A stretch of DNA of 62,548 nt, the filler included, from Sluysia triapertura (taxonomy: Eukaryota), in the NCBI GenBank assembly GCA_046118255.1. It is 5 parts of 5 records of this genome, joined end to end, with 100 filler letters (N's around TTAATTAATTAA, not from the genome) between each part and the next. Parts side by side here need not be neighbours in the genome. Positions count along the whole stretch, not along the records: positions 12,002 to 23,962 come from JBJNIA010152605.1; 4 more parts are not named here. One strand, written 5' to 3'. This document shows, piece after piece, positions 12,425 through 15,400 of the stretch. A model generated the notes under the pieces. The model searched no databases, was not told the origin of the DNA, and was given only the letters and a program-made list of their open reading frames with translations. Made by a program: the position numbers and the translations under genes. The first letter of the stretch is position 1, and each line of letters opens with the position of its first letter.

Positions 12425-15400
12425 CTACAATTCTTTAATACCAATTTCTTGATTATTACGTTCTCTTTCTTTGTTCAATTGCCTTCGTCGTTTTTTCAGC
12501 AACCTTTGACGTTCAATATTTAATTTATAAGCTGTCCTTTGGAAATTGATATTAGCTACTGATAAAATGAACCACAGAACAATCAAAAATATTGTCCATA
12601 GAATCAAAATAACAAAATAACTTAGAAATATCGACAAACTTGGTAATTTATCGTCACTTTGTTCAACCTAGAAAAATAAATGTCATATATTTTTATAAAT
12701 ATACAATATGTTAGACTTCATAAAATCGACTGACCGGGAATCTGAACCTGAGCCCTATGATGATTAAAAAACATGTATTAATATAATACTGTTTTAGAGA
12801 AGGAAAGTAATCTTCTTTCTTCTATTCAGGGACCTTATAGGACATTGTCGCGATATGCGTTATTCGAGGACTCCACAGCTAGTCGTACACACTGTCGTAC
12901 CATGGTCTTGATTTCGGTCTTGTGGAAGTCAAGTGCCTTGAGAAGCTTGTCATTCTTGGGATCCCATGAGCCCAATGCTCCAACGATGAATGTATCCAGA
13001 GACACCTTGCACTTCAGTTGTTCATGTAATTTGCCCTGTAGATCAGAATACTTAGCAATATTGGTGGTTCGGGCCATTTCGAAATTTTTCTGCAGGTCCA
13101 TGGGAGTTTTGACATCAATCAAGAACAGTTGCGATGAGAAAGTACCGCGGGCCTGTATGTCAGGTTGTCGAGTGTCACCGATAATTGGTGTAGGCGAATC
13201 CTTGATGACCGAGAACCCCATTTGGGTCATTTTGTCCGCTAGGTAATTAAGGATTTTGTTGTGCTAGACTGTTTTGGTTTTACTTGTGTGAGGACATAGA
13301 CATAGCACGTGTAGAAGGGATTCAGATTCGAAGTCACACCATCAACATGATACTGCCTAGAAAAATAAATGTTAAATATATTTTTATAAACATACAATAT
13401 GTTAGACTTCATAAAATCGACTGACCGGGAATCCGAACCTAGGCCATATGATTCTTTATCCACTGAGCTATCAGACAAGTTTAACAATCTTGTTTTATCA
13501 TAGTCAATTATTCTATGGCACTTTAGGCCTGTACCTCAACATATCTTACCCAATTCAATTATATTTGACCTCAAACATCTTGTAAATCATTAATTTCAAC
13601 ATCAGAAGGGTATTCGATGTGTACTCACGAAATGTTAGACATCATAAAATCGAACCCGGGCCCTCTCGCTGCACAGTTCGTGGGTCTACCCACTTTAGGC
13701 CTCTATCCCAACAAATATACTGAAAAATAAAAATATATCAATTAGAAAAGATTCCTGAGTAGGTTGAAGAATGGAAAACGAGATAGATGTCACAATGAAA
13801 CTTTATTCGATTGCTTATAAACAGTTGTGAGCTATAGGATGCTCGCGCGAGCTCTTTGTTAAATTATTCAATGATTTGAGAGCATATTTAATGTTGCGTG
13901 TCCATGGCCAGAAGAAAAGAGAATAAGAACTTTGAATTTTATTTTGAAAAATGAAATTAAAATAATATGACTGGAAAATTCCAAATCAAAAAAATCCAAG
14001 GTCATTATGGAAATAATCGCAACTAGCTGCGCTGAAGCTGATCGCGCTTTTAGTTATCGTTACAATGAAAAAATCTTCTCATTTTATGACGATCTACTTA
14101 AATTAGAAGAATTTAATCCTAACTCGTACGTTAAATCTTTTTTGAAAAATCATCGCTCTGCTCTGGATAAATCTAAAAGATCACAAGACCTGAAACACGA
14201 AGGAAATACAGTACGGAAGCTTCTAGTATAAGTTGTAAATATTTTCTTTTTGTAGTTATTTTTTCTTTGCTTTTTTGTTTGTTCTATTCCTTATTAATAT
14301 AATATTGTTGTTTTTTTGTATAAAATAAACCACTTAATTAACATTATTTTGGTTTTTTATGTCAGTCGCAGTGATACATTGCTAGAGAACTAGTTCTACG
14401 ATTCTCGAGACAAAAAAGAATGAACCCATTGTTAAAAATTTTATAGCTTCCCAGCACTGCTTATAAAGTTTATTTTCATACATTTGCGATTATAATTTAA
14501 ATTAATGTTAACACTTTTAAAAATGGTACTTAAAAATAAATAAAGCTACTATACCTACATGGATTAGAAATTTTGAAGTTGGTTCTAAATTCCATGCATT
14601 CTCAGTTTTAGACCGTCTATAACAAAAATATGTACCCTCATCGTTCATTTTAACTACAGAAAATAGCAACTGACAATTTTCAGCCACATAAACTCTTTCA
14701 TTAAGTACCGATCGTTGATTGAATACGTAATTCCCACGACGCCATTGTACAGTTACAGCGGTATCATTACAGACATCTGCAAACGAATCACTAAATCCAC
14801 ATGATAGTCTTTCATTTTCCATATCTTCAATATACAACTTATCAATAGATCTCATAGAAAATGTTCGATCACCAATCAAACTCATTCTTAATTTGTTTAT
14901 ATCTCTGGTCATTGCTAACTTAACTATATCCAAAGGATCTATTTCGGGACATTTAATATTAGCTACTATTTCTCCAAAAGGAGTAATAATTGAATAGGGA
15001 TTACCGAACGATTTTATTTGTTCCAAGTGACTAAAAAATGAAAAATGACATGGTAAAATTAAATTAGGATTTTTGGGAAATAATTGTACATGTAAATTCA
15101 ATGCCAAATTATCTGCTTTAGTTTTAGCAGCTTGAAAAGCACGACCACGTTGAGATGGTGGCATTTTACGATAAGCATAAAACGGTTCAATTGCAATTTG
15201 AAAAGCTTCATAAACGGAAATTTCTAAAGGACTTAGCGGTCTCATTTCGGTAGAATTATTTGGAAATTCGATATGACAACGATAAATTTGATGCAAAGTA
15301 AATACATCACACAGATTTTTGTATTGTGGTTCTTTTTCAAATTCATAAAACAACTTCACTAAGTCAGACTCGAAGATGATTTTATTATATAAATATTGTA

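Follow-up and report, generated by a model that had tools for sequence, protein, structure and literature searches.

How does a gene come to carry the same 3' splice site twice in one intron, and what could the second copy do? The question is raised by a predicted immunoglobulin (Ig)-superfamily gene of Sluysia triapertura, which lies in a window of 62,548 nt (filler included) made of five parts of five records of assembly GCA_046118255.1. The part analysed here covers positions 12002-23962 of the window (JBJNIA010152605.1), and the Ig gene and the insert in its last intron are read on the minus strand. We found that the acceptor of the exon encoding the transmembrane (TM) segment recurs directly upstream of a putative retrotransposon remnant. 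The repeated sequence is probably an unusually long target-site duplication, left when the element inserted by target-primed reverse transcription into a tRNA-like repeat of the intron.

Local alignment of positions 13452-13356 with 12761-12667 (97 and 95 nt) gave 89 matches, six mismatches and one 2-nt indel (92% identity; Kimura two-parameter distance, K2P, 0.067). This match is well above chance for 12 kb, and the 22-nt core of the repeat was expected 0.00 times in shuffled sequences. In either copy the repeat terminates at TTTTTCTAG/G (a slash marks a junction), that is, at the AG plus one common G, and ends ...ACATTTATTTTTCTAGG; beyond the shared G, the sequences that follow the two copies are unrelated. 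The upstream acceptor reads ...ACATTTATTTTTCTAG/GCAGTA, with a putative exon start at 13356, and the boundary of the final exon reads ...ACATTTATTTTTCTAG/GTTGAA. In both copies a branch-like TCTAAC precedes the AG by about 43 nt, without another AG in the interval, and the two acceptors are identical over the last 16 nt and the AG. A complete 3' splice-site module, consisting of branch-like site, pyrimidine tract and AG, is duplicated. Both repeat copies abut the element with exact boundaries, giving the pattern repeat-element-repeat. A first-pass annotation of this DNA had placed the end of the duplicated block exactly at the TM-exon acceptor and an identical acceptor at 13357/13356, immediately before the element; the alignment, with ends at 13356 and 12667, bears out both.

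Translation of the insert from 13356 reads AVSC(stop)WCDFESESLLHVLCLCP...(stop)HNKIL...NVL(stop), or more fully AVSC(stop)WCDFESESLLHVLCLCPHTSKTKTV(stop)HNKILNYLADK...RQPDI...LIDVK...GALGSWDP...NVL(stop). A knuckle of the form C-x-WC...H-VLC-x-C precedes a PD...(D/E)-x-K endonuclease motif, and this pair is the C-terminal hallmark of the R2 group. This group of retrotransposons is defined by a reverse transcriptase (RT), a zinc knuckle and a restriction-like endonuclease. The in-frame stops are TGA at 13344-13342 (codon 5) and TAG at 13266-13264 (codon 31), and the GC content of the remnant is 44.7%, compared with 27% for the genomic piece. An exhaustive profile search with the 142-residue open part recovered 306 relatives, 32 of them below 1e-10. 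In BLASTP, the endonuclease matched residues 938-1077 of the 1079-aa protein P0002 (E 1e-34) and the 25-residue knuckle piece matched residues 915-929 of the same protein (E 4e-5). The remnant is collinear with the C-terminal ~165-170 residues of relatives of ~1080 aa, and no homologue of the endonuclease piece was found among proteins of similar length. Pfam detected RVT_1, the RT domain, in the relatives P0002, P0004, P0014 and P0031 (E 1e-28 to 1e-31); three of these four also gave a match to an N-terminal Ulp1 protease (Peptidase_C48). Such a protease has been described for nematode NeSL elements and Utopia-1_TSP (PMC4640811). The top PDB matches of the endonuclease were the C-termini of R2 proteins.

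No RT domain is present in the intron copy, which is 5'-truncated at 13356. A degenerate sister copy of the same lineage, further along the same record, reaches ~55 nt further 5'; since it is longer at this end, the intron copy must be 5'-truncated. The intron copy is a dead fragment of an RT-bearing element with two nonsense mutations. The insert as a whole is predicted to be a 5'-truncated retrotransposon that lacks long terminal repeats (non-LTR) and has a restriction-like endonuclease, whose closest full-length relatives are of the NeSL type. The relative of the endonuclease with the best score, P0001 (E 1e-40), comes from the turtle Macrochelys suwanniensis. This uncharacterised protein of 1107 aa matches over four stretches, has no Pfam RT match and seems to consist of endonuclease-like segments arrayed in tandem.

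The surroundings of the insert suggest what the target was. The element lies between an A-box-like motif, TAGCTCAGTGG, and a B-box-like motif, GGTTCGGATTCC, both recognised by eye. At the upstream boundary of the repeat the tRNA-like unit runs on uninterrupted, and the boundary therefore cuts a unit that existed before the insertion. Such a position of the boundary is what a duplicated target would produce, and it speaks against the repeat being the element's own tail or a tail shared between elements. Two stops in 174 codons are in keeping with the divergence of the two copies. Planarian NeSL relatives target tRNA-Arg (LIN15_SM) and tRNA-Glu (LIN25_SM) genes (Kojima & Jurka 2015, PMC4640811), and the planarian families end in ...TTTTTAA (PMC4640811 S6 Fig). 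A string like TCGATTTTATGAA also occurs in the flank of a Schmidtea LIN25_SM copy in the same figure, and inspection by eye shows a resemblance between the 3'-junction flank TCATAGGGCTCAGGTTCAGATTC and the 5' half of tRNA-Glu located after LIN25_SM. Together with the very low GC content and the neighbouring EF-hand gene, these similarities would point to a planarian as the source of the DNA. It should be noted that the core TCGATTTTATGAWGTCTAACAT occurs three times in 1.1 kb on the minus strand (12708-12729, 13399-13420 and 13632-13653). It adjoins A-box/B-box-like motifs and may represent a family of tRNA-derived short interspersed elements (SINEs); a scan of metagenome contigs gave no match to this 22-nt core.

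We therefore favour a long target-site duplication, reached in the following way. An R2-group element with NeSL-type relatives would have entered the last intron of the Ig gene by target-primed reverse transcription, in the gene's orientation and within a degenerate tRNA-like repeat that lies ~95 nt before the final exon. What was copied would have been no more than its last ~590 nt, with zinc knuckle, endonuclease and 3' untranslated region. If the target strands were broken ~95-97 nt apart, fill-in would have duplicated the stretch from the nick site to the intron/exon border. That stretch holds the branch site, the pyrimidine tract and the AG, and its duplication would have created the second, near-identical 3' splice-site module at 13357/13356. 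The anatomy of the locus, the homology of the insert, its frame and its stops are direct readings of alignment and translation, from which we infer target-primed reverse transcription and the staggered breaks.

Several observations weigh against this explanation. A duplication of 95-97 nt far exceeds the norm for non-LTR elements, and its length is known from one copy; no flanking duplication was detected around the sister copy at 22199-22775. The target is tRNA-like in its motifs only, and neither ARAGORN nor the Rfam tRNA model gave a tRNA. In addition, the repeat ends within 1 nt of the intron/exon border, a coincidence with an estimated chance of ~2% given a nick 95 nt upstream, which the plain staggered-cut model leaves unexplained. 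In favour of the explanation, long duplications have precedents among elements with this type of endonuclease: the junctions of LIN15_SM imply ~40 bp in our own reading of PMC4640811 S6 Fig, and the duplication of the rotifer element R9 is termed 'exceptionally long' where PMC13580325 cites it (Gladyshev & Arkhipova 2009).

The coincidence at the border would be accounted for by a template jump, in which the RT, having copied the truncated element RNA, switched to the RNA of the spliced-out host intron at its 3' end (...CTAG), copied the intron RNA back past the nick site and left a cDNA that annealed to the upstream target DNA. The repeat would then stop at the intron's last base, as it does if its end is taken as the AG give or take one common G. 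Comparison with the sister copy does not allow the GCAG after the repeat to be attributed to the element, and the insert is sense-oriented in a transcribed intron. End-to-end template jumping is, moreover, an established in vitro property of R2-type RTs. We nevertheless regard this origin as very improbable. The G common to both copies (13356/12667) may belong to the exon as its first base, which an excised intron lacks, and a branch-like site 43 nt from the AG gives a lariat tail shorter than the 97-nt repeat, so that the RT would have had to read through the branch or the intron to be debranched. No precedent was found, and a coincidence of ~2% is not extraordinary in a feature chosen post hoc. 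If a jump did occur, the locus would hold an in vivo footprint of R2-type template jumping with an excised intron as acceptor, which incidentally cloned a complete 3' splice site.

The repeat could also have arisen with no duplication event, if a SINE-like element and a LINE with a common 3' tail (the tRNA-like part and a TCGATTTTATGAAGTCTAACAT... body) inserted in two separate events, in succession, and the end of the common tail supplied the acceptor. SINE/LINE pairs with common tails are frequent, and the threefold occurrence of the core motif within 1.1 kb would fit, as would the presence of TCGATTTTATGAA in the planarian LIN25_SM flank. However, the homology begins in the middle of the tRNA-like head and not in a LINE-derived tail, the element end ...TTTTTTAA, like that of published relatives, precedes the repeat, and the 3' region of the sister copy has no such tail. 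Two independent insertions ending at the same exon-adjacent base would be a still larger coincidence, and we consider such a history extremely improbable. A plain tandem segmental duplication was ruled out by the pattern, which is repeat-element-repeat and not (repeat-element) twice.

Under the favoured long target-site duplication, the consequences for the host depend on the Ig gene itself, whose exons were handled one by one, from sequence alone. A type I Ig-superfamily membrane protein, encoded by a gene with one 1891-nt intron, is a reasonable model. The exon-1 N-terminus, MKLIHKIKYLFLSGLYISIATS, is hydrophobic and signal-peptide-like. The exon ends ...TSKFLIH (AAA TTT CTA ATC CAT/GTAGGT) in phase 0 at the junction 14559/14558, and its open reading frame (ORF) continues for 13 codons past 14559 into the intron. 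At residues ~397-469, seven Pfam Ig families matched with E values of 2e-5 to 1e-2, each below its gathering score. Every protein-atlas neighbour of exon 1 is an Ig receptor, and the best PDB matches, to Ig domains of sidekick and DCC, are weak (E 0.13-0.6). A word search for homologues of the exon-1 protein found none, and an AlphaFold prediction of the ectodomain from the single sequence was of unusable quality (pLDDT, the predicted local distance difference test score, 32.6). The two-Ig ectodomain proposed in the first-pass annotation is thus retained in part: one domain has below-threshold profile support, and a second, N-terminal one has no Pfam match when scanned separately and shows a C...W...YYC pattern only.

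The final exon translates as VEQSDDKLPS-(TM)-...KEL-stop. Its TM helix, VILILWTIFLIVLWFILSV, is a 19-mer with a mean hydropathy of 2.97, followed by KKRRR, and an ATTAAA lies at 12439. The acceptor of this exon reads TTTATTTTTCTAG/G at 12668/12667, and its TAG doubles as an in-frame stop that closes the upstream frame. Since this TAG abuts 12667, the site is the sole phase-0 acceptor that opens the TM frame.

The upstream acceptor is competent in sequence. Splicing of 14559 to 13356 would read AVSC-TGA in the frame of the zinc knuckle and endonuclease, and our translation agrees with the junction KFLIH-AVSC-TGA and the fifth-codon stop proposed earlier. Whether the site is appreciably used, to give a soluble ectodomain (KFLIH-AVSC) next to the membrane form as a biologically meaningful pair of isoforms, is a separate matter, and we think it unlikely. 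Near-identical modules at the two sites would allow it; the upstream site gives the shorter intron (1202 vs 1891 nt) and is followed by exon-like sequence of 45% GC in a context of 27-31% GC, in which the codon-5 stop makes no further splice obligatory. However, it is not the first acceptor that would be encountered, as had been supposed, for the intron contains, upstream of it, eight or more acceptor-like AGs whose pyrimidine tracts are as good as its own or better; TTTTTATTTTTCAG/ at 13719 and GTGTTTCAG/ at 14189 are examples. A CAG at 13355-13353, four bases downstream, competes with it and shifts the frame; an exon start at 13352 would give a 37-aa tail, YHVDG...SLIT. Donor-like sites at 13006 and 12735 could turn the insert into a stop-containing cassette exon, and such a transcript could be degraded rather than yield a secreted protein. 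The differences between the repeat copies are evenly spread, three of the seven within the 48-nt splice module, so the upstream module shows no excess conservation or sign of constraint, and the Ig gene has no detectable homologues in which conservation could be tested.

If the upstream site were used, the product could be an anchorless protein with the tail AVSC or the 37-aa tail, and equally an unproductive transcript; a secreted isoform would be a possible but unsupported outcome. The Ig-endonuclease fusion suggested for the time before the nonsense mutations would follow only formally, from a frame match with a one-in-three chance and the assumed use of the acceptor. The sister copy, said to have CGA opposite the TGA, has CGT (TGT CGT TGG TGT).

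Table 1. Features of the Ig gene, its last intron and the inserted element (positions in the window).
Feature	Position	Strand	Details
Exon 1, coding sequence of Ig gene	14559..16004	-	482 codons; ATG at 16004 (ORF scan)
Splice donor GTAGGT after CAT	14553..14558	-	7/9 consensus positions
Last intron	12668..14558	-	1891 nt today; ~1200 nt before the presumed insertion
Third partial tRNA-like/SINE-like unit	13632..13710	-	Common core TCGATTTTATGAWGTCTAACAT and common start AGGCCTAAAGTG
tRNA-like 5' segment	13453..13480	-	A-box-like TAGCTCAGTGG at 13470-13460; continuous with upstream repeat copy
Upstream repeat copy	13356..13452	-	B-box-like GGTTCGGATTCC; branch-like CTAAC 13405-13401; pyrimidine tract; AG 13358-13357
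5'-truncated retrotransposon coding remnant (predicted)	12835..13355	-	Natural stop 12837-12835
CCHC zinc knuckle	13341-13267	-	Translation and BLASTP
Restriction-like endonuclease	13263-12838	-	Translation and BLASTP
Element 3' untranslated region	12762..12834	-	73 nt; ends ...CATGTTTTTTAATC; no poly(A); end uncertain by ~3 nt
Downstream repeat copy, TM-exon acceptor	12667..12761	-	Branch-like CTAAC 12714-12710; pyrimidine tract; AG 12669-12668
Final exon	12425..12667	-	Short stalk, TM helix, basic cytoplasmic tail; stop 12427-12425
Degenerate sister copy, same retrotransposon lineage	22199..22775	-	~60-65% nucleotide identity by eye; many frameshifts

The closest parallels to this insertion are the planarian LIN families (LIN15_SM, LIN25_SM; PMC4640811). 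They share with the remnant a C-terminal CCHC knuckle and a PD...D-x-K endonuclease, and with its closest full-length relatives the set of Ulp1 protease, RT and endonuclease. The A/T-rich ...TTTTTAA 3' end without poly(A) and the insertion within tRNA-like sequence are also alike, as is the junction flank TCATAGGGCTCAGGTTCAGATTC when compared with the tRNA-Glu 5' half beside LIN25_SM. Unlike those elements, the intron copy consists of the last ~590 nt only, without RT or protease. The target is a degenerate intronic tRNA-like repeat instead of a tRNA gene, and the duplication is ~97 nt long. The rotifer element R9 is similar in its type of endonuclease and in a duplication of ~100 nt, reportedly 126 bp. 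However, R9 is specific for 28S ribosomal DNA (rDNA) and its duplication is reproducible, whereas the present case is a single truncated copy in the intron of a protein-coding gene.

Secreted and membrane isoforms made by choice of the 3' terminal exon are familiar from the immunoglobulin heavy chain and many receptors, in which the start of the last coding segment likewise decides on the TM anchor. Those isoforms rest on RNA evidence and usually involve competition between polyadenylation sites; in the present gene, known from its DNA sequence, a single 3' end would serve both acceptors. Exonisation of transposable elements is alike in that an insertion puts a competent acceptor before element sequence inside an intron. 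It differs in the source of the acceptor, which in this locus would be host sequence copied by target-site duplication and not borne by the element.

The locus would thus provide an instance, outside rDNA, of a restriction-like-endonuclease retrotransposon that made a very long (~97 nt) target-site duplication, and the insertion supports the published link of this lineage to tRNA-like targets. If the upstream acceptor were used, it would also be a natural example in which one transposon insertion lets a membrane receptor gene make a soluble ectodomain as well, the new splice site being the host's own intron sequence supplied by the target-site duplication. The mechanism would be an ordinary one; its consequence is neat, but hypothetical and unproven.

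Other features of the analysed part were recorded. On the plus strand, positions 14007-14231 hold an ORF of 74 aa that lies antisense within the intron of the Ig gene and is followed by a stretch containing AATAAA; it had no Pfam match and no homologue in the search. A plus-strand gene at 17201-17994 includes two or more exons that match Pfam EF-hand families (17201-17368 with E 5e-7, 17601-17744 with E 8e-6); positions 17845-17994 are probably a third exon, without a family match. Upstream of the sister copy, positions 22770-23070 carry tandem-like repeats of 83-117 nt. Microsatellites occur at 12011-12050, 16693-16740, 16851-16909 and 23781-23842, with (AT)20 and (AAT)/(TTA)/(TAA) of ~16-20 units, and short tandem arrays with units of 35-45 nt at 18267-18371 and 19387-19490. 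The microsatellites and the tandem arrays sit in intergenic DNA of 18-25% GC.

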